Sequence record: MW460245.1
Length of the DNA: 64,000 nt
Strand: one strand, 5' to 3'
Of the stretch, positions 6,833-21,741 are shown in pieces. A model generated the notes under the pieces. That model was given only the letters and a program-made list of their open reading frames with translations, was not told the origin of the DNA and did no database searches. Position numbers and translations under genes: made by a program. Positions within the stretch are counted from its first letter, which is position 1, and every line of letters starts with the position of its first letter.

Positions 6833-6986
6833 GGAATACTCCCCATGCGAGTTTGATTCGAGTTCTCAGGCCACCCGTCGATAACGGGCGGGCCGGAATC
6901 CATTTGCCTTCCACTACCATATGCACGTCACACTTATCCAGCGTGCATGCGAAGATGCGTTGGGGCGCTTGATTACGTTTAGCCAT
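6789..6986 (-). CDS. Small hypothetical protein
   Basis: RBS upstream; operonic. Confidence 0.45.
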   Translation of the reverse strand: MAKRNQAPQRIFACTLDKCDVHMVVEGKWIPARPLSTGGLRTRIKLAWGVFRGRYDALDWNLPRS

Positions 6987-7494: not shown

Positions 7495-7768
7495 CGAGGG
7501 CCTTCCATGCGCGAACGAGACGGCGTTCAAGGACTTCGCGGTACTTGTCCATGTAGGACAGTTGATCGCGCAGGTCGAATTGCTCTTCGCCTACCAGCGT
7601 AGTGAACAACCCATTCTTGGTGATGAAGGCAGCAAGAGCAACGCCCTTCAGCTTGAGCTCTGCGTGCTCCTGGTAGACGCGCTGCATGTGCGCAGGCAGG
7701 AGGCGCACGTCGATATCACGAATGCTCACAGGTGCAGCGGAAGCGTTGGAAGTGTAGGTCGATGCCAT
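7472..7768 (-). CDS. Small conserved phage protein (crAss001_48-like helical hairpin)
   Basis: EHAEL..K...LAAFI...F..L..EEQ..L..QL..M..Y..VL..RL pattern. Confidence 0.6.
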   Translation of the reverse strand: MASTYTSNASAAPVSIRDIDVRLLPAHMQRVYQEHAELKLKGVALAAFITKNGLFTTLVGEEQFDLRDQLSYMDKYREVLERRLVRAWKALDAAAPQA

Positions 7769-7782
7769 TTCAGACTCCTTGT

Positions 7783-8454
7783 TTAACGACGAAGGCCCTT
7801 AGCGAGGGCAAAGAATTCCTGGCGAACCTCCGGCTTGCGGAAGTCACCGCCGAGTTGCGAGGTGATCGTGTCGCTGCATGCGTCCATCACGCCTCGCGTT
7901 TTGACGCACATATGCTCTGCTTCAAGGACGACCGCGACGTGAGGCGTGTCCAGGATGAACTTGAGCGTCTCGAAGATTTGGGCAGTCAGGCGTTCCTGCA
8001 CTTGCGGTCGACGGCAGAAGAAGTCCACGATGCGATTGATCTTGGACAGGCCCACCACGTCCTTGTTTGGGATGTAAGCAACAAATGCCTCGCCAATTAT
8101 TGGCAAAAAATGGTGCTCGCAGGTCGAGTGAACCGTTGCATGACCACGGATCATCTCGTCATATTTGAACTTGTTCTCGACGACGGTAGCCTTCGGGAAG
8201 TTGTTGTAGTCCAGGCCATAGAAGATTTCCTGGGTGAACATCTTGGCGATACGCTTCGGCGTCTCGTACAGCGAATCGTCCTTCAGGTCGAGATTCAGTT
8301 CGGCCATGATCGCAGCCATATGCGATTCGATCTCTGCGCGGCGCGGCTTATGGAGCTCCGGGTGATGGACCATCGGCGTTTCCAGACCCATTTCGTACAG
8401 GTGCTGGTGAACCTTATGGCCGATGCTTGCGTCTTTCTGATATTCCGTTTTCAT
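7783..8454 (-). CDS. folE: GTP cyclohydrolase I
   Basis: ETPKRIAK, STCEHHFLP, GLSK, RPQVQERLT, HMCVKTRG. Confidence 0.97.
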   Translation of the reverse strand: MKTEYQKDASIGHKVHQHLYEMGLETPMVHHPELHKPRRAEIESHMAAIMAELNLDLKDDSLYETPKRIAKMFTQEIFYGLDYNNFPKATVVENKFKYDEMIRGHATVHSTCEHHFLPIIGEAFVAYIPNKDVVGLSKINRIVDFFCRRPQVQERLTAQIFETLKFILDTPHVAVVLEAEHMCVKTRGVMDACSDTITSQLGGDFRKPEVRQEFFALAKGLRR

Positions 8455-9050
8455 TACAGGAGTCCTTTCTTAACTTGATCGATGATGTGTTGCTTGTATG
8501 CTTCGAGCTCCGGCTCACTCATTACAACGAGGTTGAGCTCATACGTCACGAGATCCATGTTCGGTATCTCTGTACGCGTTACTTCACCTGCATATTTTGC
8601 CGCAAGCTCTCGTCCCATTTCGGACGCAAGGACGTGCGGTACGAATTTCTGCAGGTCTGTCTTAAATTCCTTCTCGATGTGTAGTGCTGCGAGGCACCGC
8701 GCTGCCACACCGCGAGGGTTGTGTTTGGGATGCTCCGGGATTGCTTGCTTGCAGTCTTCGCACAAACGAACGCCCTCGTAATAAGGGATCGTGTTGGGAT
8801 GCGTACACTTGACGTTGACATGATCCTGCAGGTGCGCCTTGCCTCTGTCAGTTATGTGCCACGAGGAGCCAGTGCGATAGGGCGATGGCTTTCGTGTCAT
8901 GTAGACAAGCTTGTACGCAGACAGTTGCGCCAGAATCGTTCCAACAGCACCGACGTCAAGCCCTATCTGACCAGACACCTCAGAGGCTGTAGCGCCTCCA
9001 ACCTTAGCACCGACTGCGGCCAGTGCTTCCCTGTGATAAGTGGTTAACAT
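8454..9050 (-). CDS. Winged-helix DNA-binding protein (MarR-like N-terminus)
   Basis: TASEVSGQIGLDVGAVGTILAQL...LV...W.ITDRG; RBS AGGAG before ATG at 9050. Confidence 0.55.
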   Translation of the reverse strand: MLTTYHREALAAVGAKVGGATASEVSGQIGLDVGAVGTILAQLSAYKLVYMTRKPSPYRTGSSWHITDRGKAHLQDHVNVKCTHPNTIPYYEGVRLCEDCKQAIPEHPKHNPRGVAARCLAALHIEKEFKTDLQKFVPHVLASEMGRELAAKYAGEVTRTEIPNMDLVTYELNLVVMSEPELEAYKQHIIDQVKKGLL

Positions 9051-9076
9051 CGGTGCTCCTAATTGCGTTGATGTTG

Positions 9077-9397
9077 TTACGCCAGCGTGGTCGGTGCTGC
9101 TACTGCGCGGTTGAGCCACATGAAGGCTGTTTGGAAGTGGCGCATCGCTTCGTCTACTGCTGCTTCAGAGGACGTGACGGTCGATTGCGGCGCTTCCTTG
9201 TTTTCGAGGCGTTGCTGCTCGCGTGCTGCGATATGCGCGCGAACCTTCGTCAGCTGGTAACGCACGCCTTCGCCGAGACCTTTGTTTTCATTCATCAGGT
9301 CGACGTCGGACTGCGTCAGCTTGCGATAACCGCTGATCGGAGGCGGCGTGTACACTGCCTCGATAGGATCGTCATTGCTTTTGATCTGTTCCTGCAT
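9077..9397 (-). CDS. acb2: Acb2-like (T4 Vs.4 family) cyclic-oligonucleotide sponge, anti-CBASS candidate
   Basis: ISGYRKLTQSDVDLMNENKGLG...HFQTAFMWLNRAVAAP matches the Acb2 pattern GYRxLSQEEIDxMNxxKxLG...QTGxMxxxRAxAQP; RBS CAGGAG. Confidence 0.8.
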   Translation of the reverse strand: MQEQIKSNDDPIEAVYTPPPISGYRKLTQSDVDLMNENKGLGEGVRYQLTKVRAHIAAREQQRLENKEAPQSTVTSSEAAVDEAMRHFQTAFMWLNRAVAAPTTLA

Positions 9398-9827
9398 TTT
9401 GCTTCTCCTGTTGAACGAGGTGCATCGGCGTGAAGCGAACAGTGCCATCCTCAAGATTGCCATAGAACATCTCACGCGGGCGCGCGTAGATGTTTCGCTT
9501 GTGCGGCCAGAGGTGCTCGTAGATCACCAGCTGTTCTTGGTTCTCTGTGTGCAGTGCCTCGAACAGCACTCGGTAGAGACCGCCCTTGTAATGGCGGTGT
9601 GTTGCAAGCGCAAGAGCTTCCGTTTCAATCAGAAACGTCTGACCTGCGATTTGCTTGGTTGCGGCAGTGACACGTGCCCAATCTTCGATCGTCTCAGCAC
9701 GCCAGCGCAGCGTGCGGCCAACAGAAGCGTCTGCTCCTGGGAACTTGTTCTCAGCACGCCAGCGATCGATAGTGCTTCTGGAGATATGCAGGTACGCTGC
9801 TACCTCCTTGATGGTCATCGTTTTCAT
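9372..9827 (-). CDS. AlpA/excisionase-like HTH fused to DUF1653
   Basis: MTIKEVAAYLHISRSTIDRW...FP...RW plus HRHYKGGLYRVL..A.H.E...LV.Y...ARP..MF. Confidence 0.75.
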   Translation of the reverse strand: MKTMTIKEVAAYLHISRSTIDRWRAENKFPGADASVGRTLRWRAETIEDWARVTAATKQIAGQTFLIETEALALATHRHYKGGLYRVLFEALHTENQEQLVIYEHLWPHKRNIYARPREMFYGNLEDGTVRFTPMHLVQQEKQNAGTDQKQ

Positions 9828-10018
9828 GGGTACATGATCCCTACAGAGTTAACGACAGGAGCCTGATAACCGTTCTCATCAGAGAAGAGCGAACTACCAG
9901 TTTCGAGAGCGTAATCAGTGATAGCATCCTCGACATACGTTGTCAGACGGTGCTCGTCTTCCTCGGTGATGTGGTCAGGCCATTCGACTTCCACTACGTA
10001 ACGTCTCTTCAGTGCCAT
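9824..10018 (-). CDS. Small hypothetical protein
   Basis: TAATG coupling with the queE stop. Confidence 0.5.
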   Translation of the reverse strand: MALKRRYVVEVEWPDHITEEDEHRLTTYVEDAITDYALETGSSLFSDENGYQAPVVNSVGIMYP

Positions 10019-10881
10019 TATGCCATTGCCACGAAAAGGTGTTGTTGGAGGCTCAAGCAAATGTTGTTCGCAAGAGCGTACTCACCTGCGTATCGGTAAT
10101 TGGCCGCCGTTGCCTCACGGTTGATGAGCTCGTCGTCCCAGATGCTAGAGACTTCACCTGCGTAAGGCTTCTTGTAGACAGCCATCGGCGATACCATCAA
10201 GCGCTGCATGCCGTGCTCTTCGGCCCATGCAAATGCCCAGTCAGGGATCGTGTGATGCGGCGACTCAGGATCAGCATCGACCACGAACTTCAGGTAGTCA
10301 GCGCGGTTCAGCACCTTCTCCGACAGCTTACCGTACTTACCTGCCTTGTAGACAGCCTTCGGAGAGACAACCACCGTGATTTCAGAAAGCCAGAAGCTCT
10401 CAGCATCGCCTTTCTTGAACAGTGGCATCTCTGCATCCAGCAGCTCAAAGAAGGAGGCCTGCGTGCCGTTCGTTTCGATCTGGACTGCGAGGTATTCATC
10501 TCCGACGCGCTCGAGGAACGCAGCGAGGTTATGCTGGAGCGTAGGTTCGCCGCCGGTGATAACCAGTACACGTTTGCGTCGGTCAACGCGGAAGGTATCG
10601 ATGATCGAATCGATCTTGTCGAACGACATGACCTTACCTTCGTTGAACTGGAACGAGGTGTCGCAGAAACGGCAAGCGCCAGCCTCGCTCTTTGCTCCGT
10701 AGTTGCAGCCAGATAGACGGATGAAGACAGCAGGCATCCCGGCGTAGGGCCCTTCGCCCTGCAGCGTGTCGAAAATCGAGGTGACCAACAGTTCGTCAGG
10801 CTTCAGGATGTAATCGTATTCCGCTTTTGCAACGTTGCGGTCAACGTTCTGTACAACAATGGGGAACGTCTTATGCGTCAT
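10018..10881 (-). CDS. queE: 7-carboxy-7-deazaguanine synthase (radical SAM), atypical CX10CX2C motif
   Basis: SIFDTLQGEG...PAVFIRLSGC, CRFCDT, VITGGEP.LQ, QIETNG, VVSPK, SLQQH; RBS AAGGA before ATG 10881. Confidence 0.95.
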   Translation of the reverse strand: MTHKTFPIVVQNVDRNVAKAEYDYILKPDELLVTSIFDTLQGEGPYAGMPAVFIRLSGCNYGAKSEAGACRFCDTSFQFNEGKVMSFDKIDSIIDTFRVDRRKRVLVITGGEPTLQHNLAAFLERVGDEYLAVQIETNGTQASFFELLDAEMPLFKKGDAESFWLSEITVVVSPKAVYKAGKYGKLSEKVLNRADYLKFVVDADPESPHHTIPDWAFAWAEEHGMQRLMVSPMAVYKKPYAGEVSSIWDDELINREATAANYRYAGEYALANNICLSLQQHLFVAMA

Positions 10882-10895
10882 GGTGATTCCTTGGC

Positions 10896-11342
10896 TCAAT
10901 AGCTCATCTTGTGGTGGTCCCTCGTGTCTGCGTCGAAGATACCTTTGACCTTCTTCTTGAACACAGGTGCCGTGGAGTTGAATGCATGCCTTGTATTTAC
11001 TTTGCACGCCTCCGGTTTACCACGCTTCGTCTTGATGTACATACCGCGAAGCACCACGCAGTCCACGATAGGGATACCAGCCGTAGTAAGCGCATCGACC
11101 GAATCATGGACGTAGGAGTTCGTCGGTGAGCCTGCTTGAACCCACGCATCAATCGAAGGGTAATGCGGATGCTTCGTCTTGAAGACCAATCCACCTAGAC
11201 AGCTCTTGCCCTTGAAGATGACACGCTTCGGTTTGACGACCTTCTTGGCTTTCTTTGCCTTAGGACTTTTTGCGCTTGAGGCTGCTGCCTGTTGCTTTTT
11301 TGCCTGGTCCTTCTGGGAAGGTTTTGCCGTGGAATTTTTCAT
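10896..11342 (-). CDS. Hypothetical basic protein inside the deazaguanine operon
   Basis: Fills the dpdA-queE gap and overlaps the dpdA 3' end by 83 nt. Confidence 0.5.
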   Translation of the reverse strand: MKNSTAKPSQKDQAKKQQAAASSAKSPKAKKAKKVVKPKRVIFKGKSCLGGLVFKTKHPHYPSIDAWVQAGSPTNSYVHDSVDALTTAGIPIVDCVVLRGMYIKTKRGKPEACKVNTRHAFNSTAPVFKKKVKGIFDADTRDHHKMSY

Positions 11343-12600
11343 AGCGAGAGATTACAGCCTCGTAGTGTGCGTCTGTCTTGATTGTTGTCTGAGCGAGACC
11401 GGCCAGCCCCTTCGTCTTCGAAGTGCTACGCATCGGCTTCCACTTGTTCGCCATCACATCGCGAATGTAGTTCACCAGCAAAGTGAACTTGTTCAAGGTG
11501 ATGTTGAGGTCCATCTTCTGGTGCACCTCAGCCAGCGGCACCTTACCTGCGAGATAGTCCTCAGCCAGTGCACACAGGAAGCGTGTCTGTTCAGCACGTA
11601 CCCACAGGTTGTGTGCTTCGAGGATACGCCACGAATGAATGATGCGCAGGTCATCGATGGACGTGCAGATAGGGCAGTTGCACTGCGGGGTCTGACGATA
11701 CGCCTGGTTCTTCTTCAGGTCCAGCGTCTTGAAGTCAGCCGTGTCGTACATACCGACCAGCGCTCCGAGACGATGGCTCACCGAGTCAGCGCCGATATTC
11801 TTCACGTAGCCGCTACGTTCCAGCAGCGCATAGAAAAACATCATGAGCTTGGATGTTACACCCAGGACGTGGAAGTACTCAGTCTTCTTGTGGTAGCGGC
11901 TAATCACATACATCAGGTTCTCGACTGCTGCGTTCGTGCGGTCGATACCTGGCGGCGGCTTGATGCCGAGACCTGCGATTGCTACCACGTTCGCCTTACG
12001 ATCCAGCACGTCAAGTCTGGCTTTACGAAGTTCGACCGTCGACCCGTGACTGATGAGTGCCAGATCGATACCGGGATCGAGGCGCTTCAGGATGTAGTCG
12101 TCATTAGCCTTGATGAGGTGCGACACCTGACGGAAGTACGCAGGTTCGAAGGCGGTTCGCACCGGCAAGTCCAGAGGCATGCCGATGTTTGCGTCCTTGT
12201 TGTAGCGGTCAATCACGCCATCCGGATGCACGAAGTCCACGTTGGCTCGCAGCAGCTGGAAGCCACCCGAGTCTACGATGGACTTGATGCCCTGTTTCTC
12301 GTACGGTGCTTTCTTGTAGTCCTTTCCCACTTCAGGGTTCGCCAGAACGAGGGAAAGCCCGCATGCCTTGATGGCCGTCGGGCTAAAGATGGGAACGCAA
12401 ACGTCGAATTGCTCTTCAGGAATGACCGCACCACGTGCTGAGGACATGGCCTCTACGACGGTGCGATCCTTTGTACGCCAACGCTTGACCTTCGGGCCAA
12501 ACTCGGTCGTTTCTTTTTCATTGGGCTTGTTTTTGACGTACAGCTGAGCAGTCCGCTCGCTGTACGCCTCAACGCCCGCCGGTACATAGTGGACGGTCAT
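11260..12600 (-). CDS. dpdA: TGT-fold guanine transglycosylase, DpdA-like (DNA 7-deazaguanine insertion)
   Basis: DSGGFQ, MPLDLP, AIAG, FHVLG, GADS, zinc site CNCPIC...HNL; adjacent to preQ-pathway genes. Confidence 0.85.
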   Translation of the reverse strand: MTVHYVPAGVEAYSERTAQLYVKNKPNEKETTEFGPKVKRWRTKDRTVVEAMSSARGAVIPEEQFDVCVPIFSPTAIKACGLSLVLANPEVGKDYKKAPYEKQGIKSIVDSGGFQLLRANVDFVHPDGVIDRYNKDANIGMPLDLPVRTAFEPAYFRQVSHLIKANDDYILKRLDPGIDLALISHGSTVELRKARLDVLDRKANVVAIAGLGIKPPPGIDRTNAAVENLMYVISRYHKKTEYFHVLGVTSKLMMFFYALLERSGYVKNIGADSVSHRLGALVGMYDTADFKTLDLKKNQAYRQTPQCNCPICTSIDDLRIIHSWRILEAHNLWVRAEQTRFLCALAEDYLAGKVPLAEVHQKMDLNITLNKFTLLVNYIRDVMANKWKPMRSTSKTKGLAGLAQTTIKTDAHYEAVISRYEKFHGKTFPEGPGKKATGSSLKRKKS

Positions 12601-12612
12601 TGTGTTCCTTGG

Positions 12613-13725
12613 TTAAAGCGTTCGCAGCTCGTGAATGATATTGCGCATACCATCCGTATCGAGGTCGTCCATCTCTTCCATGAAGTAGAACGGATTCTCC
12701 TCGTAGGCGCGCATATGGCGGATCATGGTGTCGTGCCCCATGTCCCTGAACAACCATTTACTGCTCACGAACTCCGGATGCGAGGCGGCATCTGTCAGCA
12801 CAGGTGCGCACCCATAGATCATGGCCTCAGCAATGCAGTAGCCGTAGTTCTCTTCCCGCGAATGCGAGACCATCATGACAGCAGAGGCGAGCTCTTCGTG
12901 GTACTGCTGCTTGGTCAAGTTCACCTTGATATCGAGGACGCCATCTTCCTGCGCGAGAAGTGCCTGACGCACCACCGCATCGTCGTTCGAACGCAGCGTC
13001 TTACGTGAGGACGTGATGACGAATTGCCATTCCGGGAACTGTTTCTTGAGATCGCGGAACAGGTCGATGGTGACGATCGGATTCTTCTCGGTGTCCAAGC
13101 GGTTCGTCAGCAGGATTTTCTTCTGCTTCGGAATCAGCTTACCAAGCTTCTGGTACTCGGACAAGAAGATCGGATTCTTCGTGACCTTGATGCGGTCTGC
13201 CAGATGCAGTGCGTTCAGCGGAGCGAGACGCCTCGTCATCACTGCCTTCTTGTGGTACAGAGAACCAACGAACACCTTATCGCATGCTGCGATCCAGCCC
13301 ACCTCAGTGTATTGCTGATACGGCGCAGCAACCTCGAATGCGTCGCCCTTCGTGTACGAGGCAGCATGAAGAAACGACACGAGGTGCACCTTCACCTTGT
13401 TCATTTGCGCCATCAGACGAATCTGTTCGAGGCCCCAGAACTCCGTATCGAACACGAAGATGATGGCGCCGTCTTCGACCTCACCGCGATTGAACATGCC
13501 AGCGAGGTACTGGAGTTGGGTGCTCTTGTAGTGACACGTCGAGTTGATGTCGAGGAACGTACCGACCTTGATGTCGTCCTCCAGCAACGGCTCACCGTTG
13601 ATAATGAACACATCGAAGCCAGCCTTGCTGAGTGCCTCGGGAATGCGGCGATACCATTGCTCTGTGTAACGTTCGCTGAGCGGTTCGATCGGCAGGCAGA
13701 TGAGTTGCTTGCGGTCAGTATGCAT
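12613..13725 (-). CDS. GT-B fold glycosyltransferase (GT4-like)
   Basis: NRLDTEK and E-X7-E motif EENYGYCIAE followed by AMIYGC.PV. Confidence 0.85.
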   Translation of the reverse strand: MHTDRKQLICLPIEPLSERYTEQWYRRIPEALSKAGFDVFIINGEPLLEDDIKVGTFLDINSTCHYKSTQLQYLAGMFNRGEVEDGAIIFVFDTEFWGLEQIRLMAQMNKVKVHLVSFLHAASYTKGDAFEVAAPYQQYTEVGWIAACDKVFVGSLYHKKAVMTRRLAPLNALHLADRIKVTKNPIFLSEYQKLGKLIPKQKKILLTNRLDTEKNPIVTIDLFRDLKKQFPEWQFVITSSRKTLRSNDDAVVRQALLAQEDGVLDIKVNLTKQQYHEELASAVMMVSHSREENYGYCIAEAMIYGCAPVLTDAASHPEFVSSKWLFRDMGHDTMIRHMRAYEENPFYFMEEMDDLDTDGMRNIIHELRTL

Positions 13726-14182
13726 TGTCGTCGAGCTCCAGGTCACCCTCGAAGTCAGCCGGGGCGGTTTTGATGGCCTGCGTTACAGGGAACACGAACA
13801 CATGGCGGTCGCGCTCGAACTTGATTTGATCGCCTTCACGCAAGCATTCGATGTCGGTGAAGCTCCAGAACGCAGGGCCTTCCACTTCGTTCTGACCTAG
13901 CCAATGGAACGCAGAAGGATCGACACGCAGCATGAGCGTGATGTTGGACGGACGGTACTCAACGCGCGTCTTGGTTACGTCCATGGTCACGTAGCAGCTA
14001 AACTCCAGCCCCACCTTTTCATACGTGAGGATACCGCTGTTGTCACTTATGTACAGGTGATTGATGCTATGCACGCGCAACGCGTTCTGCACCTTTCGCG
14101 TGTGGTCGCGGACGAACTCTGCGTTGGTGAACAGGGTGGGGATGCCCTTGAGGCGCCCCTCTACTTCCAGTCCGATTTTCAC
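13715..14182 (-). CDS. Hypothetical protein in the modification operon
   Basis: Tightly packed between the deacetylase and the GT; N-terminal GLEVEGRLKGIPTLF. Confidence 0.7.
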   Translation of the reverse strand: MKIGLEVEGRLKGIPTLFTNAEFVRDHTRKVQNALRVHSINHLYISDNSGILTYEKVGLEFSCYVTMDVTKTRVEYRPSNITLMLRVDPSAFHWLGQNEVEGPAFWSFTDIECLREGDQIKFERDRHVFVFPVTQAIKTAPADFEGDLELDDNAY

Positions 14183-14185
14183 TTG

Positions 14186-14893
14186 TTACTCCGTTGTGTA
14201 TTGAATGTCGCCCCAGCGCATCTCGACCTTGTCTTTGCAGACTTCAAGAAGGTACGAATAGAATTTGGCGACGCGTTCTCTGACAGTAAAGCCGCCAACC
14301 TTCTCTGCATAGCGGGCCCTTACGTCCTGCATTTCGAGGCGATTCCAGTCTTCGTCAGTACACTTCACACATACACCTGCACCGTAATGCACAGTGTGCC
14401 ATTCGTAGATGTTGAAGTCCTGCTGTCGGATGTCCTCGAACAGGTAATACTTGGCATCGTTCTGCCAGAGGGAGGACTGCGAAAGGTAGAAGCTGTCCAA
14501 CAGTCGGCGCTTGTCCTTCGAAGCTTCCTCACCGAGGTACACACCTCGTTTCATGTCCACGCTGTAGAAATGAGTGGCGAAGTGCCGCCACCCCCTATTT
14601 ACAGCTTTGTGATCGTCGTGCCAGTCTTGGATCGACGGCACGTATATCTCGTTGTACTCACTCAATGGCAGTGCGTTCTGCTCCCCGAAGTACGGCGTGA
14701 CATGAAGATGCTCGGCGAAGTCCAGAGCTTCACGACGACGAACATTCGTCAGTTCGTTACACCACAGCACTGACACCTTGTAGTCAGGTACAGCCATGTT
14801 TACCGCAGCGCCCCAGCCTTTGCGGATGATGCTGTAGCAACCGATGAGCTCATCGTCCACGTGAGGAGCGATGATTAGAACCTTTGTAGGCAT
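14186..14893 (-). CDS. PIG-L/LmbE-family N-acetyl-sugar deacetylase
   Basis: IIAPHVDDELIG and WHDDH metal motifs. Confidence 0.85.
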   Translation of the reverse strand: MPTKVLIIAPHVDDELIGCYSIIRKGWGAAVNMAVPDYKVSVLWCNELTNVRRREALDFAEHLHVTPYFGEQNALPLSEYNEIYVPSIQDWHDDHKAVNRGWRHFATHFYSVDMKRGVYLGEEASKDKRRLLDSFYLSQSSLWQNDAKYYLFEDIRQQDFNIYEWHTVHYGAGVCVKCTDEDWNRLEMQDVRARYAEKVGGFTVRERVAKFYSYLLEVCKDKVEMRWGDIQYTTE

Positions 14894-14905
14894 TTGTTGC
14901 TCCTG

Positions 14906-15553
14906 TTAGCAGTCGGTATCCAGCGGAATGTCGATCAGGTATTCATCACTGAAAGACACGTTGAATCGATCGATGAAGGCCCAAACGTCCATGTCCGTCC
15001 AGTCATAGATCGGATAGATGAAGTTCAGGCCACCCAGGCCGTTCGGTACGTAGCACGTCAGCTCTTCACGGGACGCAATAGCACCGTTGCGCACGAAGTT
15101 GGTCGAACGGCCGTCACCTCGATCAAACTCAGAAATGCGCGTACCATCGATCTGCGTGGTGTAGCCTGCACGAACGCACTCCTCGAGAGATGCGAATACG
15201 ATCGGACGCTTGCGCGCAGACTCGTACAGGAATTCGCGGGTCAGCGGATGCACCTTGTTCGGACCTGTCGTCTTCGGATTGTGGACCACCTTCATAGGCT
15301 TGTCCCAGAACTCTCGGTCACGCTCATGATATGCAGCACGTGCCAGGAAGTCTACGACGACGCTATCCTTGCCGCCGCTATGGCCGACGAATGCACGGTT
15401 GAGATCGAAATTACCGCACGACTGAAGGCTTGCTGCATTGATACGACGCGTTGCCTCTGCGGCCTTTTCGAAGATGCCTGCCCAGCACTTAGCATATTCG
15501 ATGTCGTCGAACTGCGCGTAAGGCTTGGTATCCGGCTTAGAAATAACAGTCAT
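14906..15553 (-). CDS. PAPS-reductase-like PP-loop (adenine nucleotide alpha-hydrolase) protein
   Basis: HSGGKDS PP-motif, DGTRISE, YPIYDWTDMDVW; lacks the C-terminal ECGLH motif. Confidence 0.8.
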   Translation of the reverse strand: MTVISKPDTKPYAQFDDIEYAKCWAGIFEKAAEATRRINAASLQSCGNFDLNRAFVGHSGGKDSVVVDFLARAAYHERDREFWDKPMKVVHNPKTTGPNKVHPLTREFLYESARKRPIVFASLEECVRAGYTTQIDGTRISEFDRGDGRSTNFVRNGAIASREELTCYVPNGLGGLNFIYPIYDWTDMDVWAFIDRFNVSFSDEYLIDIPLDTDC

Positions 15554-16463
15554 TGTTGAAGATTCCTTGTTCATCGTGGAAGACACGCAGCTTACCTGCA
15601 GGGACTTGACCGCGTTGCAGCACCAGACGCGGGATCGTGAGGAAGTCAGCTTCGACTCCAGCGCCGAAATACGCGGCAAGCATGATGCGCGCACGAGAGA
15701 TGAGCGCACCGTCACCGAACTGTTCAACACTGTCCAGAACGATCCACACGTCGAGGTCTGAGGTCGAGGGCCACTGAGGTTCCTTGACCAGCAGAGTCAC
15801 CTTCAACTCATTCGCGATTGCTTGCCACTTCTCCGATTCAGCGAACACAGGCTTTTGCTCTTCGACGTCCAGCAGAGCGATAACCTTCTTGAATGCATCA
15901 GGACGTGACACACCGTCGAACACGTTCGGCAGGTTGTATTGCGTCATGAGACGACGCAACGTGGCGTGGGTCTTCATTCGGAAATCATCCGACGGACGCT
16001 TGCCATCTTCCTGATACGCCAGAGGCGGCAGGTAGAAGATTTGGTCATATGTCGAGAGCCACGACAGGATATAGCCTTCCATGCCCTTCACCATCGGGTG
16101 ATCGGGGAAGTCGGTGCACGCGATAGCGTACAGGTCCAGCACGCTGCGATCAGTGATGACGATATGCGCGTCGCCCTTCAGCTCTGCCTCTACCTCAGCC
16201 TTCACGAGATTCGAGATCATCCCGAAGTGTGCACGAGGATCAGCCGGGAAGTGTTCATCCTTCCAAGTGATCTTGCGATCTTGGCTACTGACGACTTCGG
16301 CGAGGACATGGTACTGACGCTTGAGGCGTGCAGTAGTCTCCAGTGCCATCGTCGTCTTGCCGCTGCTGTTGGTACCAGTGAAAGCAACCTTGTACTTCGC
16401 ACTGCGCGGCTTGAGGGTCGATTGGGATGCGTCCACGAATTGTTCCATGAGAGTCTTGGTCAT
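15537..16463 (-). CDS. P-loop nucleotide kinase (AAA_28/NadR/TMP-kinase-like) with extra C-terminal domain
   Basis: AFTGTNSSGKTT Walker A, ITDRS, EDGKR lid; C-terminal SDLDVWIV. Confidence 0.75.
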   Translation of the reverse strand: MTKTLMEQFVDASQSTLKPRSAKYKVAFTGTNSSGKTTMALETTARLKRQYHVLAEVVSSQDRKITWKDEHFPADPRAHFGMISNLVKAEVEAELKGDAHIVITDRSVLDLYAIACTDFPDHPMVKGMEGYILSWLSTYDQIFYLPPLAYQEDGKRPSDDFRMKTHATLRRLMTQYNLPNVFDGVSRPDAFKKVIALLDVEEQKPVFAESEKWQAIANELKVTLLVKEPQWPSTSDLDVWIVLDSVEQFGDGALISRARIMLAAYFGAGVEADFLTIPRLVLQRGQVPAGKLRVFHDEQGIFNNDCYF

Positions 16464-16468
16464 GATGA

Positions 16469-16837
16469 TTACTGGATGATGTAGTGACAAACGGCACCGC
16501 ATTCGCCGTCTTCGGAAACTTCGATGATGAGGTCACGCTTGACCCGATCACCTTGGTAGTGTTGATCGAGGCGCTTCGCCAGATCGTCTGCGATCATTTC
16601 ACAGCTCTTGTGATTCAGTTCCAGCGTACCATCCTCGTACCAGCCTTCCACCATATTCAGGAACTGATGGAACTCGATCTCACGATTGTCGTGATGCACT
16701 TCGATCTGGATGCGGAACTTGAACAGGTGACGATGACGGTCGCGCAGGTACGCAACGTCTTCTGGTGCGTTCGGATAGAAGTGATAGCCTTTGCGTTGGA
16801 AGGTGACGTAGATGAACTTCGGATTGTGTGCCAGCAT
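16469..16837 (-). CDS. dpdL: QueD-paralogue T-fold protein, DpdL-like (predicted CDG decarboxylase)
   Basis: LRDRHRHLF (LxxxHRHxF), REIEF, KSCEMIA, VSEDGECGA; lacks the QueD catalytic Cys. Confidence 0.7.
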   Translation of the reverse strand: MLAHNPKFIYVTFQRKGYHFYPNAPEDVAYLRDRHRHLFKFRIQIEVHHDNREIEFHQFLNMVEGWYEDGTLELNHKSCEMIADDLAKRLDQHYQGDRVKRDLIIEVSEDGECGAVCHYIIQ

Positions 16838-16867
16838 ATGAACCTCAGAGTGGGTTAGGACTCAATC

Positions 16868-16877
16868 TATTTACTAC
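16868..16877 (-). promoter_or_regulatory. GTAGTAAATA motif heading the dpdL-to-queE operon
   Basis: Exact motif 31 nt upstream of the dpdL start. Confidence 0.6.
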
Positions 16878-16890
16878 GTGAGTCGCATGA

Positions 16891-16930
16891 GAAAAGGAAA
16901 CAGGAGCCCGTCCCTGAGGAAGAGCTCCTG
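16891..16930 (-). terminator. Intrinsic terminator after queD
   Basis: CAGGAGC/GCTCCTG stem followed on the minus strand by TTTCCTTTTC. Confidence 0.65.
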
Positions 16931-16943
16931 ATCGTTACTGCGT

Positions 16944-17417
16944 TTAATCCATCACTGCGCCTACTGCGGATTCTCCAGTGTATATAGCGCTATTGCCACC
17001 ATGCTCGCGCACCTCGCACTCAACAACCCATACGCGATCACCGTACTTTTCATCGATGATGCGTGAGGCCACGTTGAAAGCGAATTGGGCAAAGCGTTCG
17101 CAGCCAACACCCGGTTCCATGACCACCACGTCCATGATACCACGACGTTGTGCTTCCATGAACCATTCGAGTTCCGGGTCGTCCTTCGCTACCACTGTCT
17201 TGTGGTCGAAGGTATTGACCAACTCAGCCTTCAGCTCTTTCAGGCCACCGAAGTCGGTTACCCACCCTTTGTCGTCCAACTCATGCGCCGCGAACTTGAA
17301 ACCGATCTGGACAGCGTAGCCATGAAGCTTGCAGCAGTGCGAGTGCGTCGCGCGCCATTGACGGAAGGCGCAGGACAGGCCCACGTCGTGGGTGTACGTT
17401 TTGGTACTAAGGAACAT
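16944..17417 (-). CDS. queD: 6-carboxy-5,6,7,8-tetrahydropterin synthase
   Basis: CAFRQWRATHSHCCKLHGY, WVTDFGGLK, FDH, VREH..NSAIY. Confidence 0.93.
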   Translation of the reverse strand: MFLSTKTYTHDVGLSCAFRQWRATHSHCCKLHGYAVQIGFKFAAHELDDKGWVTDFGGLKELKAELVNTFDHKTVVAKDDPELEWFMEAQRRGIMDVVVMEPGVGCERFAQFAFNVASRIIDEKYGDRVWVVECEVREHGGNSAIYTGESAVGAVMD

Positions 17418-17439
17418 TCAGGTTCTCCTGTTGTATGCT

Positions 17440-17694
17440 CTATTTACTACCTTCAGAAAGGTTGTCAACGATGACGCTCATCCCGTAGAGGGTACCAATG
17501 CTGCCGACATTCTTAACCTTGTCTAAGAAGCGATTAACACCGTCGTTGAACGCAGCATGCATTTCCCATTTGTCCGTTATGAACAATGGCGTTCTCCCAG
17601 CTTTCGCCCTTCGCATGTAGCGGAAGCGGCCTGCTTGTGCCTTATTCGGCGGATGCTTCCTGTGCCGCCGCATACTCATCAAACTGGATGCCAT
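17440..17694 (-). CDS. Hypothetical basic protein
   Basis: Operonic position. Confidence 0.45.
   Translation of the reverse strand: MASSLMSMRRHRKHPPNKAQAGRFRYMRRAKAGRTPLFITDKWEMHAAFNDGVNRFLDKVKNVGSIGTLYGMSVIVDNLSEGSK
17441..17450 (-). promoter_or_regulatory. GTAGTAAATA motif upstream of queD
   Basis: Exact motif 24 nt upstream of the start. Confidence 0.6.
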
Positions 17695-18035
17695 AGAATT
17701 TCGTCCTTGATGTCTTCTTCGAGGATGACGGAATGTGCGGTTTGAATATGCACGTTGACGTTCATGCTGTCACCGACGTTGTTGGCCAAAGAGCAGCAAA
17801 TTGAACCAGCCTGAATGAGTTCCTGATTCACCCATTTCTCGAGGATGCGTACGAGCAGGCCAGTGATGATCCTGCGTTGTACATCGACAGGGAATATCTG
17901 CTCTCGGGAAAGCTGATCCCTGATGACCTGCTCGCGAGCCTCCCGCAGTTCCTGCATGATGAGGCGAAACACCATTGCCTGTTCAGCAGGAGACTGCAGG
18001 TAATAAGGCTTCGTAATGTGGTCGCGATTGTTCAT
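17679..18035 (-). CDS. Hypothetical protein
   Basis: ATGA coupling with the HD gene. Confidence 0.55.
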   Translation of the reverse strand: MNNRDHITKPYYLQSPAEQAMVFRLIMQELREAREQVIRDQLSREQIFPVDVQRRIITGLLVRILEKWVNQELIQAGSICCSLANNVGDSMNVNVHIQTAHSVILEEDIKDEILWHPV

Positions 18036-18790
18036 CGCATCACCGGCTCATCTTCCGATCCTACTGGCATCACCACACCACCCTGCGAATAGTCCCACTC
18101 ATTGACCAAGTCCACAAATGCACGCAGTGCACGGGTCAGTTGGAAGCGGCGCATATCCCGCGCGTATTCTGTGAACAGCTCTGCAGTCACCTGGAACGTG
18201 TAGACTCCGTCCACGAAGGCTTGAAGCTGTTCAACGGTAGCGCAGTCCATCCGCTTCCGATTCATCTCCTCGTACAAGCCGATGAGTACCTGACGGCCAG
18301 CCGGCGTGTACAGCATCATGAGGTCGGCATCGCGCAGGCATTTCTGAGAATACGTCACAGGTTCAACAGGGAATTGTTTGCCGTCGAACCACGTACACTT
18401 GATGAGGTCCACCACCGTTTCCACATCGTAGTCACTTCGGGCGCTGTTAGTGAGATAGCGCGGCATGTATTCACGCACGAAGGTAACAGCGCTATCGATG
18501 TTCCGTTCGTCCGACGTGACTCCACCGCTGTGGTTGAAGTCATGCATGAGCGCTGCAACCATCAGGTTATTCGAAGTGCGCAGCGAGAATTGTTCCTTCG
18601 GACCATGCATGAAGGCGCTGATCGCGTGGAACGCTACCAGCATCATGTGACCGACGTTGTGGTAAGGGTTCGCGCAGTGGACGCCTTGGTCCATCATACG
18701 TGCTACCTGACCGATGACGTTGTGTTGGGCAATGAACTCCTTACGCAGTTCGCCCAGCTCGAATACATTCATAGTGCCAAAGCTAGCCAT
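18032..18790 (-). CDS. HD-domain phosphohydrolase (PDEase-like)
   Basis: NPYHNVGH, AALMHDFNHSG, LRDADL. Confidence 0.8.
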   Translation of the reverse strand: MASFGTMNVFELGELRKEFIAQHNVIGQVARMMDQGVHCANPYHNVGHMMLVAFHAISAFMHGPKEQFSLRTSNNLMVAALMHDFNHSGGVTSDERNIDSAVTFVREYMPRYLTNSARSDYDVETVVDLIKCTWFDGKQFPVEPVTYSQKCLRDADLMMLYTPAGRQVLIGLYEEMNRKRMDCATVEQLQAFVDGVYTFQVTAELFTEYARDMRRFQLTRALRAFVDLVNEWDYSQGGVVMPVGSEDEPVMR

Positions 18791-18791
18791 G

Positions 18792-19814
18792 TTAACCTCG
18801 TTGAGTCTTCGTGTATGAAAGGGACTTCTCCAACAGCTTCACTACCTCCTTCGGGAGCTTCTTGCCTGTGAGGTGATAGCTGAATGCTTCGGCAATCGTC
18901 TCCTTGTAATTCTTGCATGCATACTCAGAGATGACAGGAGCCAGCTCTTTGTTCGTCACGCGTTTCGGCCATAGGTACTGAAGGTCATCGCGGTAGTCTG
19001 CTTCCCACAGCAGATCCAACTCCTTCGCAGTGATGCCATGCTGCTGGCTGATCGTGCGGAGAATCAGCTTGTATGCCTCAGTATCCTCTTCTGACAGATT
19101 GCTCTTGAAGTCAGACGGACGGTCTTCCTGTGCAAGCAGGTCAGTAAGGAAGCGTTTGCAATCCTCCGCCTTCACTTGCCCAATCTTGATTGAGCTATTG
19201 AAGAGGCGAACCCACTTTGCTTCTAGCTTCGTGCTGTTCTTCAAAAACTCGTAATGCCAGTGATGACCGAGCTCGTGATGAATCACGTACTGCATTTCAC
19301 TGAGCGGCTGGCACTCGGGATGAATCTGGAAACGATGCGGCATCTTCTCGCTGTTGGCCGAACGCAGATACATGCCGGCATACTTGCCACCGTTGTAGGG
19401 ATGCACTTCCCACAGACACGTCGTCGGATCGATCAGGTAGTCGAGACCATTCGCCTTGAGGGTCTTGTATGCCTTGCTGAACCCTTTCAGGATCTTGTCG
19501 CGTGTTTCCTTTTCAGGAGTGTAGAACCAGCAAAGTGCTCCGAAGTCTTCGTGCGTCTTGCGGCCCTTATACAGGGAACCTACCTCGGTACCGTACACCT
19601 TGCCTGCTGCGGGATCAGGACCCAGATTCAGGATCACGTCCTTCTTAGGTACTTCGACCTGTACGCGAAGCTTGGGGATATGCGAGTTCTTTTCAAGGGT
19701 ACCGGTCACGATGCCCTTGTGAATGCTTTCCATCTTGAATAGGAACTTACGTGCGCTCTTGCCAGCTTCGTCGCGTACTGTTCCGATAAGGTAATCGCCA
19801 GCCGTGAATTCCAT
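18792..19814 (-). CDS. Zincin-like metallopeptidase-domain protein
   Basis: IHHELGHHWH (HExxH) and distal Y..KN..E.IAEAF; RBS AAGGA before ATG 19814. Confidence 0.6.
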   Translation of the reverse strand: MEFTAGDYLIGTVRDEAGKSARKFLFKMESIHKGIVTGTLEKNSHIPKLRVQVEVPKKDVILNLGPDPAAGKVYGTEVGSLYKGRKTHEDFGALCWFYTPEKETRDKILKGFSKAYKTLKANGLDYLIDPTTCLWEVHPYNGGKYAGMYLRSANSEKMPHRFQIHPECQPLSEMQYVIHHELGHHWHYEFLKNSTKLEAKWVRLFNSSIKIGQVKAEDCKRFLTDLLAQEDRPSDFKSNLSEEDTEAYKLILRTISQQHGITAKELDLLWEADYRDDLQYLWPKRVTNKELAPVISEYACKNYKETIAEAFSYHLTGKKLPKEVVKLLEKSLSYTKTQRG

Positions 19815-19835
19815 AGCGTTCCTTGCGGCGTGAGA

Positions 19836-19878
19836 ATAAAAAGAAGGCCCTGAGCCTCGGGGGAGTAGACTCAGGGCC
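19836..19878 (-). terminator. Intrinsic terminator
   Basis: GGCCCTGAG/CTCAGGGCC stem followed by TTCTTTTTATT on the minus strand. Confidence 0.7.
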
Positions 19879-19920
19879 CATAAAGATCGGCTGCATGCCA
19901 GCACCGATCATGAAGAAACT

Positions 19921-20907
19921 TTATTGCGCTGCTGCGGGCGTTGCCGGCTGCGGATGACCACCTGCTTCGATTTCAGCGACGACGGCTGCCGGAACCGAAG
20001 CCGTTGCCATCACGACGTTGGTACCTTCGTCCTGCGGCAGAGCAGGTTGGTACGGTGCGTCATCCATCGGAGTCGACACGGAGGTCAGGCCACGCTGCGA
20101 GGCAGGCATTTCCTCGGCAGGCTCAGCATCCGGCTGTACTTCCTGATCCGTTGCCAGCACCAGCGTTGCGTAGCGCGTCGAGGTGTTCGCGTAGAAGTTC
20201 GGATACACACCGACCAGGTAATCCCAGTCGACCGTGATCTCAACACCCTTGTGAGTGCCGATGTAGACCACGCTGTAATAGTCCTGCTCCGGGTTGCTGC
20301 TGCTGAACGACTTGTAGATGTCTTCCAGCGTCAGGCCTTCCTTCAGCTCGATGCTGAATTCGTGCATGAGGCGGCCCGACTTCACGTCCGGCATTTGCGC
20401 GTAGCCTGCGACTGCGCTGCTCAGGAGGTTCGCGTCGATAACCGGCGGCTTAATCACTTGGCCCTGCGGTGCTGCGGTACCGAACGTCGTCACCAGACCT
20501 TCGGTGCGCGGCACGACAGCAACACCACCTTCGCTTTCCTGCTCTGCCACCGAAGCCTTTGCAGCCTGCATGATCGGATGCTGGTCAAGCGGAACGTTGT
20601 TCTGCACAACCATTTCCGACTCTTCCTCTTCACCCGGAAGTGCTTCGAACAGTTCGGTGACAGCGATCTCGACGTCCGGATCGACATTGTGGAACTTGCG
20701 CTTGGCGAGGAACTTCGCACGCGGCACACAAAAGACGTTGCCTTGTTGGTCAGCATAGATGACGCTGATCGGGTACTCACCTTGGCGCGACTTCGGAACC
20801 GCTTCGTTGACGGTCATCAGGACGGTGTGCTCGGAACCTTTGTCCGTTTTCCACACAGAGCCCTGGGTCAGGAATTCGAGGTCGATCGGGGATACTGCAT
20901 TGCTCAT
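19921..20907 (-). CDS. Hypothetical protein with Pro/Ala-rich C-terminus
   Basis: RBS AAGGA before MSNAVSP; strong GC3 codon bias. Confidence 0.7.
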   Translation of the reverse strand: MSNAVSPIDLEFLTQGSVWKTDKGSEHTVLMTVNEAVPKSRQGEYPISVIYADQQGNVFCVPRAKFLAKRKFHNVDPDVEIAVTELFEALPGEEEESEMVVQNNVPLDQHPIMQAAKASVAEQESEGGVAVVPRTEGLVTTFGTAAPQGQVIKPPVIDANLLSSAVAGYAQMPDVKSGRLMHEFSIELKEGLTLEDIYKSFSSSNPEQDYYSVVYIGTHKGVEITVDWDYLVGVYPNFYANTSTRYATLVLATDQEVQPDAEPAEEMPASQRGLTSVSTPMDDAPYQPALPQDEGTNVVMATASVPAAVVAEIEAGGHPQPATPAAAQ

Positions 20908-20968: not shown

Positions 20969-21352
20969 TTATTTACTACCTGTGGGAACCTGCAGAGTAG
21001 TAGGATTTCCATCAGGCGCATGCGCGTTTGCAATAGCAAGAGCGAGGTCTGCATTCATGTTGAACGCCTTACGAACAACCTCTGCCAGCGACTGGTGGTT
21101 ACGACGGCAGCTTTGGTACTGCGCGTTCCATCGTGCAGCTTGATCCAGAAAGTCCTTCTGGTTGAGAGTGCGGTCTGGCATCGCGTCCAGATACTGATCG
21201 CAGTCCTCCAGAAGAGCCGGATCGATGTTGACCCGCTCCTTCTGCGGTACCATCGGTATGGTGGGCTGGACTTGAACAGGTGCAGTAGTGCAACCGACTG
21301 CGAACACCAGAACGATTACGGCGAGACAAAGGGCGATGGCTGTATAACGCAT
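20969..21352 (-). CDS. Outer-membrane spanin (o-spanin, lipoprotein)
   Basis: Hydrophobic signal with lipobox AVGC, Pro-rich linker, L.E.C...L; directly follows the i-spanin. Confidence 0.75.
   Translation of the reverse strand: MRYTAIALCLAVIVLVFAVGCTTAPVQVQPTIPMVPQKERVNIDPALLEDCDQYLDAMPDRTLNQKDFLDQAARWNAQYQSCRRNHQSLAEVVRKAFNMNADLALAIANAHAPDGNPTTLQVPTGSK
20970..20979 (-). promoter_or_regulatory. GTAGTAAATA motif
   Basis: Exact motif 63 nt upstream of the 20907 start. Confidence 0.55.
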
Positions 21353-21741
21353 TAACTTCCTCCACTTAACAGCAGCGCGTTAGCTGCCTTAACGGTAGCA
21401 GGCGTAATAGCGCACGTGGTCGCCTGCTGAGGGTTATCCTTCACGTATTGGGTGATGATGGTGCTTTGCTTTGCTTCGAGGAGCTTCTGCAAAGCACGGT
21501 TCGCCGATGCAGCGTTCTGGCTTTGGAGTTCCAGGTCGCTGATCTTTTTGTTGTCAGCCTCGCGACGTTGATTCTCGTCTCTGTCGCGGGCCTGGAGTTG
21601 GTCTTTGAAGCCTTGGACTTCCTTGTCACGAGACTTCTGACCTTTCGGGTAGCCATCCTCGTAACCAGAGCTATGACCCCATTCGTACACACCAAACAGC
21701 AGGGCGGCTACAGCGGCAGCACCTGCCAGATATTTCCACAT
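21352..21741 (-). CDS. Inner-membrane spanin (i-spanin)
   Basis: N-terminal TM helix, GY..GY, coiled coil, C-terminal Cys. Confidence 0.75.
   Translation of the reverse strand: MWKYLAGAAAVAALLFGVYEWGHSSGYEDGYPKGQKSRDKEVQGFKDQLQARDRDENQRREADNKKISDLELQSQNAASANRALQKLLEAKQSTIITQYVKDNPQQATTCAITPATVKAANALLLSGGS

Follow-up and report, generated by a model that had tools for sequence, protein, structure and literature searches.

7-Deazaguanine DNA modifications shield phage genomes from restriction and CRISPR nucleases, and the eight derivatives known are all small (PMC10516641). The gene described here, QRE00066.1, lies at positions 14906-15553 on the minus strand of a 64,000-nucleotide window (the whole stretch of DNA that was analysed) from record MW460245.1 of Burkholderia phage BCSR5, among genes for a predicted modification of this kind. 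On the combined evidence of translation, profile and fold, it encodes a PP-loop ATP pyrophosphatase of 215 amino acids (aa) with the fold of the PAPS (3'-phosphoadenosine 5'-phosphosulfate) reductase/CysD/FMN adenylyltransferase (FMNAT) group, which is called PAPSr below. With a probability of about 85%, PAPSr was judged to serve as the activating PP-loop enzyme in a branch of phage 7-deazaguanine modification that adds a sugar decoration.

Among the described clusters closest to that of BCSR5 are those of the 2'-deoxy-7-deazaguanine (dDG) type, as in the phages phiST (Cellulophaga) and ACP17 (Acidovorax), which combine DpdA3 with DpdL (PMC10516641). BCSR5 agrees with them in having FolE, QueD, QueE, a predicted DpdL and a DpdA-like protein and in having no QueC; clusters of the BCSR5 type add a PP-loop enzyme, a deacetylase, the conserved protein p155 and sometimes an AAA_28 kinase. 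DpdL is a paralogue of QueD that carries the motif LxxxHRHxF, and its role as decarboxylase of 7-carboxy-7-deazaguanine (CDG) was proposed but not demonstrated by Hutinet et al. 2023 (PMC10516641), who expressed two dpdL genes, one of them that of ACP17. T-fold enzymes bind pterins or purines (PMC10516641).

Other described clusters contain QueC, which like PAPSr is a PP-loop ATPase encoded with FolE, QueD, QueE and DpdA, and which in Achromobacter phage Motura occupies the same slot. Gat-QueC pairs QueC with a glutaminase (PMC10516641), and PAPSr is likewise paired with, or fused to, an amide hydrolase. PAPSr differs from QueC in that its partner is an LmbE/PIG-L deacetylase, in that a glycosyltransferase is always present, and in that the two have no homology beyond the P-loop. 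DndC and BrxP resemble PAPSr in their PAPS-reductase fold, intact PP-loop and DNA modification setting; unlike them, PAPSr has no Fe-S cluster and no Dnd or BREX partners, and it is acidic.

A further parallel is found outside DNA modification. In the biosynthesis of mycothiol (MshA/MshB/MshC) and bacillithiol (BshA/BshB/BshC), a glycosyltransferase of family 4 (GT4) and a PIG-L/LmbE deacetylase are combined with an ATP-dependent ligase that acts on the freed sugar amine. The genes around PAPSr follow the same logic of a triad, but by analogy only: the ligase fold would be that of PAPSr, no homologue of MshC or BshC takes part, and the acceptor is presumably a deazapurine in place of inositol or malate.

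Identity and conservation of the gene

The window was taken to be the first 64 kb of the BCSR5 genome (MW460245.1, 227,351 bp, a sewage isolate), because positions 12000-20000 match it at 100% identity and at identical coordinates. The open reading frame (ORF) of QRE00066.1 starts with ATG at 15553, ends with TAA at 14906-14908, and equals the annotated coding sequence, which is named 'hypothetical protein'. An antisense ORF at 14894-15559 on the plus strand was rejected as merely mechanical, the gene being on the minus strand. Homologues numbered 75 in a collection of 5.8 billion proteins, and among 1.84 billion proteins approximately 100 cluster representatives were found at E<=1e-3, 81 of them at E<=1e-10; because of these, QRE00066.1 can be regarded as a real conserved gene and its motif as no product of chance. 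Most of the homologues are 165-230 aa long and are encoded on phage-sized contigs. The family is acidic, with a median isoelectric point (pI) of 5.6 and a net charge of about -5.

A reading made from the sequence alone (the sequence-only reading) had pointed to an SGGKDS PP-motif and a PI.DW...VW signature in a protein with neither an ECGLH catalytic tail nor an Fe-S cysteine cluster, and it was correct on each point. The PP-loop occupies residues 59-64 and the C-terminal signature of the PAPS-reductase type residues 181-191 (P181-I182-x-D184-W185...V190-W191). Across 110 aligned homologues, S59, G61 and S64 do not vary, G60, K62 and D63 are 99% conserved, and SGGKDS as a whole is present in 108 sequences. 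H91, K94, T105, Y110, Q134, D136, G137, R139, E142, R145, G157, R162, G172, P181, I182, W185, V190, S202, E204 and Y205 are near-invariant in the same alignment. Neither an ECG[LI]H-like nor an EC[GA][LIV]H motif occurs in any of the 110, and no alignment column holds cysteine in at least 20% of them. The five cysteines of the BCSR5 protein fall in columns with 1-3% cysteine; the median is two cysteines per sequence, and some sequences have none.

Fold and family placement

The description of the product as a PAPS-reductase-like PP-loop protein was borne out by both profile and fold. The BCSR5 protein itself scores 20.7 bits against Pfam PF01507 (gathering cutoff 22.5), clear homologues exceed the cutoff (P0098, 46.4 bits; P0113, 37.8 bits), and many cluster members carry a precomputed PF01507 match; PHROG 2302 matches at 2e-12. 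When the family profile was compared with the PDB, the best matches were CysD (1zun, 1.4e-11) and the PAPS domain of human FAD synthase (8rom, 5e-9), followed lower in the list by NAD synthetases, TtuA, GMP synthases and PAPS reductases. The AlphaFold2 (AF2) model (pLDDT 90.6, pTM 0.87) places the PP-loop at 59-64 directly after a strand at E54-57. This agrees with the PP-loop ATP pyrophosphatases (the adenine nucleotide alpha-hydrolase superfamily), in which an SGGxDS loop follows the first beta-strand of a Rossmann-like fold. The top Foldseek matches of the model in the PDB were 8ron/8rom (FAD synthase/FMN adenylyltransferase), 1zun CysD, PAPS/APS reductases and TtuA, with a probability of 1.00 for FAD synthase, CysD and the PAPS/APS reductases and TM-scores of 0.45-0.59; the human FAD synthase PAPS domain was matched at 7e-9 with a TM-score of 0.59. 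The best non-self match in a library of viral structures was a giant-virus protein named 'riboflavin kinase', and phage 'PAPS reductases' came next.

Adenylyl transfer with release of pyrophosphate (PPi) is the mechanism common to the PP-loop superfamily, and an intact PP-loop of the ATP type is typical of its ATP-using members and not of CysH. CysD and FMNAT/FAD synthase, which use ATP to adenylylate an oxyanion and set PPi free, have in common with PAPSr the fold, the intact PP-loop (S/N-G-G-K-D-S/C) and the motifs G-x-R-x-x-E...R and P-(I/L)-x-x-W. They differ from it in several respects. Identity is 17-19% at TM-scores of 0.55-0.59; PAPSr, at 215 aa, is shorter, lacks both a CysN GTPase as partner and any domain of the flavin or MoCF type, and belongs to a context of 7-deazaguanine DNA modification as opposed to sulfur or flavin metabolism. 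Its near-invariant residues H91, K94, Y110, R162, S202, E204 and Y205 have no assigned counterpart in CysD or FMNAT. The NCBIfam CysD models score 25 bits on PAPSr against cutoffs of at least 195, and no CysN-like or other GTPase was present among the neighbours scanned with Pfam. On profiles and model together, PAPSr is best placed in the PAPS-reductase clade as a PP-loop ATP pyrophosphatase whose nearest kin are the members that have kept the use of ATP, and it appears to form a divergent, phage-restricted branch of that clade.

Homology to QueC, for which the sequence-only reading had suggested PAPSr as a possible surrogate, was not found. PAPSr has no match to QueC/ExsB in Pfam or NCBIfam, the probability given by hhalign for the PAPSr family against Motura QueC is 0.6%, and no chain named QueC occurs in the PDB profile list (E<=1) or among the 50 best Foldseek matches in the PDB. 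The C-terminal zinc-binding cysteine cluster of QueC has no counterpart, as no cysteine is conserved in the 110 homologues. Homology to QueC was rejected on the five comparisons by Pfam, NCBIfam, PDB profile, hhalign and Foldseek. For lack of conserved cysteines, PAPSr does not belong with Fe-S enzymes such as DndC or TtuA either: no [4Fe-4S] cysteines of the APS reductase, DndC or TtuA type are conserved in the 110 sequences.

Gene neighbourhood and module conservation

The genes that surround PAPSr in BCSR5 are given below in the order of transcription.

16944-17417, minus strand: QueD, 6-carboxytetrahydropterin (CPH4) synthase (Pfam PTPS 2.7e-15; PHROG 2389, QueD-like, 6e-41; 59% identical to Motura QueD)
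16469-16837, minus strand: DpdL-like T-fold protein, 122 aa, unannotated (signature L-x3-H-R-H-x-F; family profile matches ACP17 gp125 at 4e-58)
15537-16463, minus strand: AAA_28 P-loop kinase-like protein, 308 aa, accessory (Pfam AAA_28 5.5e-11; PHROG 2107)
14186-14893, minus strand: LmbE/PIG-L-type metal-dependent deacetylase-like protein, 235 aa (motifs; Pfam PIG-L 24.3 bits, cutoff 28.2)
13715-14182, minus strand: p155, conserved protein of 155 aa between deacetylase and glycosyltransferase (in 26 of 27 loci)
12613-13725, minus strand: GT-B/GT4-type glycosyltransferase, 370 aa (Pfam Glycos_transf_1 9.5e-11, Glyco_trans_1_4 4e-8)
11260-12600, minus strand: DpdA-like transglycosylase of the tRNA guanine transglycosylase (TGT) superfamily, 446 aa, pI 9.4, unannotated and missed by Pfam (tblastn, motifs, profiles)
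10896-11189, minus strand: p97, small protein of 97 aa after DpdA (same position in 11 of 27 loci)
10018-10881, minus strand: QueE, CDG synthase, radical SAM (annotated 7-carboxy-7-deazaguanine synthase; Radical_SAM 1e-11; 51% identical to Motura QueE)
7783-8454, minus strand: FolE, GTP cyclohydrolase I, after three small genes (Pfam PF01227 2.4e-57)

From the AAA_28 gene through DpdA the genes are tightly packed, with gaps or overlaps of at most 17 nucleotides (nt), and the end of the AAA_28 gene overlaps the start of PAPSr by 17 nt. A scan of 7000-18500 for promoters and terminators gave nothing above the expectation from shuffled sequence.

Neighbourhoods were compared over 79 viral-contig loci retrieved with the family alignment, three metagenome contigs, and Xanthomonas phages BUDD and X1, and their ORFs were labelled by iterated profile searches. 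Co-occurrence was counted within 10 kb on either side, save in the two complete genomes (BCSR5 and BUDD). In 27 loci the PP-loop protein is at least ~31% identical to BCSR5 PAPSr, and all 27 share the gene order PAPSr, PIG-L-like protein, p155, glycosyltransferase; this module is complete in 26 and is cut by the contig end in one. More distant PAPS-reductase-like proteins (identity at most 29%; L033-L040 and L042-L045) are not accompanied by the module. A DpdA-like gene was found with 21 of the 27, FolE and the DpdL-like gene with 17 each, QueD and QueE with 10 each, and the AAA_28 gene with six; QueC and an AsnB-like gene were found with none. In two of the metagenomic phage contigs that carry the full module, a second and shorter PP-loop paralogue is encoded just after FolE (L003:16174-16743 and L015:15992-16567).

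Natural fusions of PAPSr with the PIG-L-like protein occur in P0098 and P0113. In P0081 (L106:7985-9163) a DpdL-like domain (residues 8-121) is followed, after about 100 residues, by the PP-loop domain (223-390). The P0098 and P0081 fusions were confirmed in module context.

The module appears to be confined to phages. A tblastn search with PAPSr among 50,697 phage records gave relatives only in BCSR5, BUDD and X1, and a pattern-limited scan of one genome from each of 185,579 bacterial and archaeal species gave no cellular relative. No description of the module was found by full-text literature searches directed at the pathway or module, or in the titles and abstracts of papers naming BCSR5, and the text of the 2023 survey of phage 7-deazaguanine modifications mentions neither PAPS reductase nor glycosyltransferase (PMC10516641). 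The locus was rated as a known type of system (DpdA-based, QueC-less, DpdL-type 7-deazaguanine modification) with a previously undescribed tailoring module.

The DpdA-like protein matches the Motura 'tRNA guanine transglycosylase' at 2e-36 in tblastn, with 25% identity, and contains DSGGFQ and CxCxxC. Its profile matches archaeosine TGT (3e-8) and QTRT1 (7e-5) in the PDB, and the family profile matches ACP17 gp123 (424 aa, two genes upstream of the ACP17 DpdL) at 1e-26. The DpdA proteins linked to the module split into two widely separated subgroups, whose identity to the BCSR5 protein is 54-58% in one and 18-23% in the other. The DpdA-like family has a median pI of 9.1, as against 5.1-6.0 for the four module proteins.

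In the deacetylase-like family, P10, H11, D13, D14, D90, H92 and H95 are invariant among 22 homologues. In alignment they coincide with the corresponding stretches of TT1542 (1uan), an LmbE protein, and represent the LmbE/PIG-L motifs (A/P)HxDDE and HxxH, which serve metal binding and catalysis; the assignment of 14186-14893 to the LmbE/PIG-L deacetylases is based on motifs and a weak profile match. The glycosyltransferase is the best-conserved member of the module (mean column identity 45%), and its profile matches GT1-family proteins in the PDB; weak NCBIfam matches are to BshA and GlcN-PG synthase. No Pfam match (22 members), PDB profile match or significant Foldseek match was obtained for p155, whose AF2 model is of moderate quality (pLDDT 72.9), and p97 matched no NCBIfam family. 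In the DpdL-like protein, S78, C79 and E80 are invariant in 16 sequences. Its kinship with QueD was not significant in HMMER against the PDB and was weak (probability 26%) in hhalign against the QueD of the window, so that its assignment as DpdL depends on the motif and on its homology with ACP17 gp125.

Absence of QueC and comparison with other phages

In the complete BCSR5 genome, PAPSr is the sole protein-supported ORF with a PP-loop motif, and tblastn searches of the genome with Motura QueC and with the Gat-QueC of phage JG054 gave nothing better than E=0.09. The Motura probe can be considered sensitive, because it matches 275 phage records. The complete genome of Xanthomonas phage BUDD likewise gave no QueC by tblastn and PP-loop motif scan, its only PP-loop ORFs being an NAD synthase and the PAPSr homologue. 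By these searches, QueC is absent from both genomes. BUDD also encodes a set for NAD salvage and synthesis that consists of NAMPT, NMNAT and NAD synthase (L103-L104, record 175975-181728).

Among phage records, the best non-self match of QueE was in Motura. The two phages share a backbone that runs from primase and peptidase through QueD, a variable slot and TGT to QueE and FolE, with one gene before QueE and another before FolE. In Motura the slot (L011:8086-9972) holds QueC and an asparagine-synthetase-B-like gene, and in BCSR5 it holds the DpdL-like, AAA_28, PAPSr, PIG-L-like, p155 and glycosyltransferase genes, a natural cassette swap. Since Motura has QueC and AsnB there, the slot between QueD and DpdA is the probable seat of CDG-tailoring enzymes, and the identity of only 25% between the Motura and BCSR5 DpdA proteins would suit an altered specificity for the base.

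In ACP17, FolE and one further gene are followed by DpdA3, then by a module glycosyltransferase homologue, DpdL and QueE. The glycosyltransferase homologue, on which the text of the 2023 paper that tested DpdL and DpdA of ACP17 is silent, is gp124 (L092:6534-7562; family profile 3e-38, weak GT4 Pfam matches), and gp125, which adjoins QueE, carries L-x3-H-R-H-x-F. The PP-loop enzyme, the deacetylase and p155 are missing from ACP17. The DpdL homologue marks BCSR5 as a QueC-less, DpdL-type 7-deazaguanine phage.

Proposed role and alternatives

The assignment of PAPSr to a sugar-decorating branch was built on observations of fold, motifs, synteny, gene fusions and the absence of QueC. As to substrate, nucleophile, order of steps and product, we infer the following scheme, to which, taken as a whole, slightly less than an even chance was given: PAPSr activates the carboxylate of CDG by adenylation, an amino sugar that the deacetylase has unmasked attacks it to form an amide, and DpdA inserts the decorated base. 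PAPSr would transfer AMP from ATP to an oxygen nucleophile and release PPi, a type of reaction proposed because the PP-loop is of the intact ATP type and no redox or Fe-S cysteine is present. The acceptor would most likely be the C7-carboxylate of CDG, the end product of FolE, QueD and QueE. An acceptor from the 7-deazaguanine pathway is suggested because PAPSr replaces QueC and AsnB in their slot, because it is fused to a T-fold DpdL-like domain, because its fusion to an amide hydrolase recalls the amidotransferases that combine a glutaminase with a PP-loop enzyme, including Gat-QueC, and because the triad of GT4, PIG-L and ATP-ligase follows the logic of mycothiol and bacillithiol. Glycosyltransferase and deacetylase would supply the amino sugar, whose freed amine would attack the activated acceptor, and the basic DpdA-like transglycosylase would then bring the decorated free base into DNA by exchange. 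The acidity of the module proteins and the basic character of DpdA suggest that the module acts on small molecules and that the completed base is afterwards swapped into DNA. L020, a locus that lacks deazaguanine genes within 10 kb, encodes at 12966-13706 a sugar O-methyltransferase (RMNT_CmcI, 4.8e-38), two genes beyond the glycosyltransferase of the module; the presence of this enzyme was counted in favour of the scheme. That large phages of the BCSR5 type replace guanine by a previously unknown amino-sugar-conjugated 7-deazaguanine, made as a free molecule by an amidotransferase-like pair of a new kind (PAPSr ligase and LmbE-type deacetylase) and inserted by a divergent DpdA, is a more tentative proposition, whose chance was judged somewhat lower than that of the scheme.

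Several points weigh against this scheme. CysD and FMN adenylyltransferase, the nearest relatives with solved structures, transfer AMP to sulfate or phosphate and let go of a product that is stable, and the PP-loop enzymes that adenylate a carboxylate match PAPSr less well (NAD synthetase) or not at all (QueC). Two genes upstream of PAPSr, and fused to it in P0081, is the DpdL homologue (16469-16837), which is predicted to compete for the CDG carboxylate and which the sequence-only reading had overlooked; if DpdL does decarboxylate CDG, CDG cannot be the acceptor. The role of the glycosyltransferase's acceptor and that of p155 are left unexplained by the model. Four module loci (L020, L021, L031 and L032) have no deazaguanine gene within 10 kb; the DpdA pattern scan detected just one DpdA subgroup. 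Literature searches directed at the pathway, and the titles and abstracts of papers that name BCSR5, gave no modification data for BCSR5, BUDD or X1. The suggestion of carboxyl adenylation for linkage to a sugar or amine, which had been made in the sequence-only reading, is partly supported: it is favoured by synteny and fusion with the deacetylase and by synteny with GT4, and is weakened by the chemistry of the nearest relatives on sulfate and phosphate.

The main rival, suggested by the chemistry of those relatives, is an adenylyltransferase in the style of FMNAT or CysD, with a chance put at roughly one in four: AMP would be transferred to a phosphate or similar oxyanion and a stable AMP conjugate released. 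An example would be an ADP-linked sugar or amino sugar donor made from a sugar phosphate and used by GT4, with the deacetylase acting on the sugar either while it is bound to the nucleotide or after its transfer. The top matches in profile and fold (CysD, the FAD synthase PAPS domain and yeast FMNAT), the giant-virus 'riboflavin kinase' among viral folds, and the glycosyltransferase as the most conserved module member would all suit such an enzyme, as would the AAA_28 P-loop kinase gene, which in BCSR5 and in five further loci lies directly upstream, its stop overlapping the next start; yet AAA_28 is present in just six of the 27, known sugar-activating nucleotidyltransferases have another fold, and neither the fusion with the DpdL-like T-fold domain nor the occupation of the Motura QueC/AsnB slot is explained. 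DpdL could be a true decarboxylase if PAPSr were instead a carboxylate-amine ligase for some other acid (an amino acid or a small acid) that N-acylates an amino sugar installed by glycosyltransferase and deacetylase on the 7-deazaguanine made by DpdL, as MshC and BshC act after MshB and BshB. ACP17, with DpdA3, a GT4-like protein and DpdL only, suggests stepwise accretion around a glycosyltransferase core, and the PAPSr-PIG-L fusion fits deacetylation followed by acylation; such a ligase was nevertheless held to be unlikely, as no candidate gene to supply the acid is conserved in the module, the DpdL-PAPSr fusion is left unexplained, and MshC and BshC belong to different families.

As a plain surrogate of QueC, PAPSr would convert CDG and ammonia to 7-amido-7-deazaguanine (ADG) and/or 7-cyano-7-deazaguanine (preQ0) for insertion by DpdA, and the sugar genes would serve another purpose. 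The setting favours this: FolE, QueD and QueE are present, QueC is missing from the BCSR5 and BUDD genomes and from the 10 kb around all 27 loci, Motura has QueC in the equivalent slot, and QueC is itself a PP-loop enzyme. Against it, PAPSr never occurs without PIG-L, p155 and glycosyltransferase in the 26 complete module loci; moreover, its likeness to QueC does not extend past the P-loop, no zinc-binding cysteine is conserved, QueC-less DpdL phages such as ACP17 manage without PAPSr, and no QueF or other preQ0-using enzyme was seen among the Pfam-scanned neighbours, so that a plain surrogate was given a low probability. Lower still was that of an enzyme acting on DNA in the manner of DndC, which would adenylate a backbone phosphate or the deoxynucleoside form of CDG (dCDG) after its insertion by DpdA. 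DndC and the BREX type 4 protein BrxP are proteins of the PAPS-reductase fold that work on DNA (PMC12914056), but PAPSr is a single domain of 215 aa with no DNA-binding module, its family is acidic where the DpdA-like family is basic, Fe-S cysteines are lacking, and no DndA-, DndD- or DndE-like gene was present among the Pfam-scanned neighbours. An auxiliary metabolic gene for sulfur assimilation, that is a true PAPS/APS reductase, agrees with the name 'PAPS reductase' in Pfam, PHROG and JGI. Against it, the cysteine of ECGLH is absent from all 110 sequences, no other cysteine is conserved, the PP-loop is of the intact ATP type and the genomic context is one of DNA modification. It was excluded for want of the catalytic cysteine and of any Fe-S cysteine.

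Other genes of the region

Between QueE and FolE, the minus-strand gene at 9077-9397 encodes an Acb2/Tad1 hairpin domain (PF24729, 1e-11) and is a candidate sponge for CBASS/Thoeris signalling nucleotides, and the gene at 9372-9827 (minus strand), also inside the operon, encodes a small protein with an HTH_17 DNA-binding domain and DUF1653. Downstream of FolE on the same strand are a weak match to ThyX (Thy1) at 4093-5043, a PNKP-type HAD phosphatase at 6979-7494 and a crAss001_48-related protein at 7472-7768; these three genes may have a part in modification-related nucleotide metabolism. A gene pair resembling Rz/Rz1 spanins (20969-21741, minus strand; weak DUF2514 and LysC matches) lies beside the DNA primase gene and far from the annotated endolysins.

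Implications

The combination of an ATP-activating enzyme, a deacetylase and a glycosyltransferase in DpdA/DpdL clusters that lack QueC leads one to expect a derivative of greater bulk that bears a sugar, and with it a new branch of tailoring with CDG or 7-deazaguanine as its starting point. If the base is indeed the amino-sugar conjugate proposed for PAPSr and the deacetylase, the product would be the first glycosylated 7-deazapurine in DNA, and PAPSr would provide the first carboxylate-ligase activity in the PAPS-reductase clade, extending the PAPS-reductase/CysD/FMNAT group to a new acceptor. The fusion of DpdL to the PP-loop enzyme and the glycosyltransferase homologue of ACP17 bear on a point left open in the 2023 survey (PMC10516641). 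For Burkholderia phage therapy and Xanthomonas biocontrol, the chemistry of the phage DNA matters for sequencing, for restriction mapping and for resistance to host defence.

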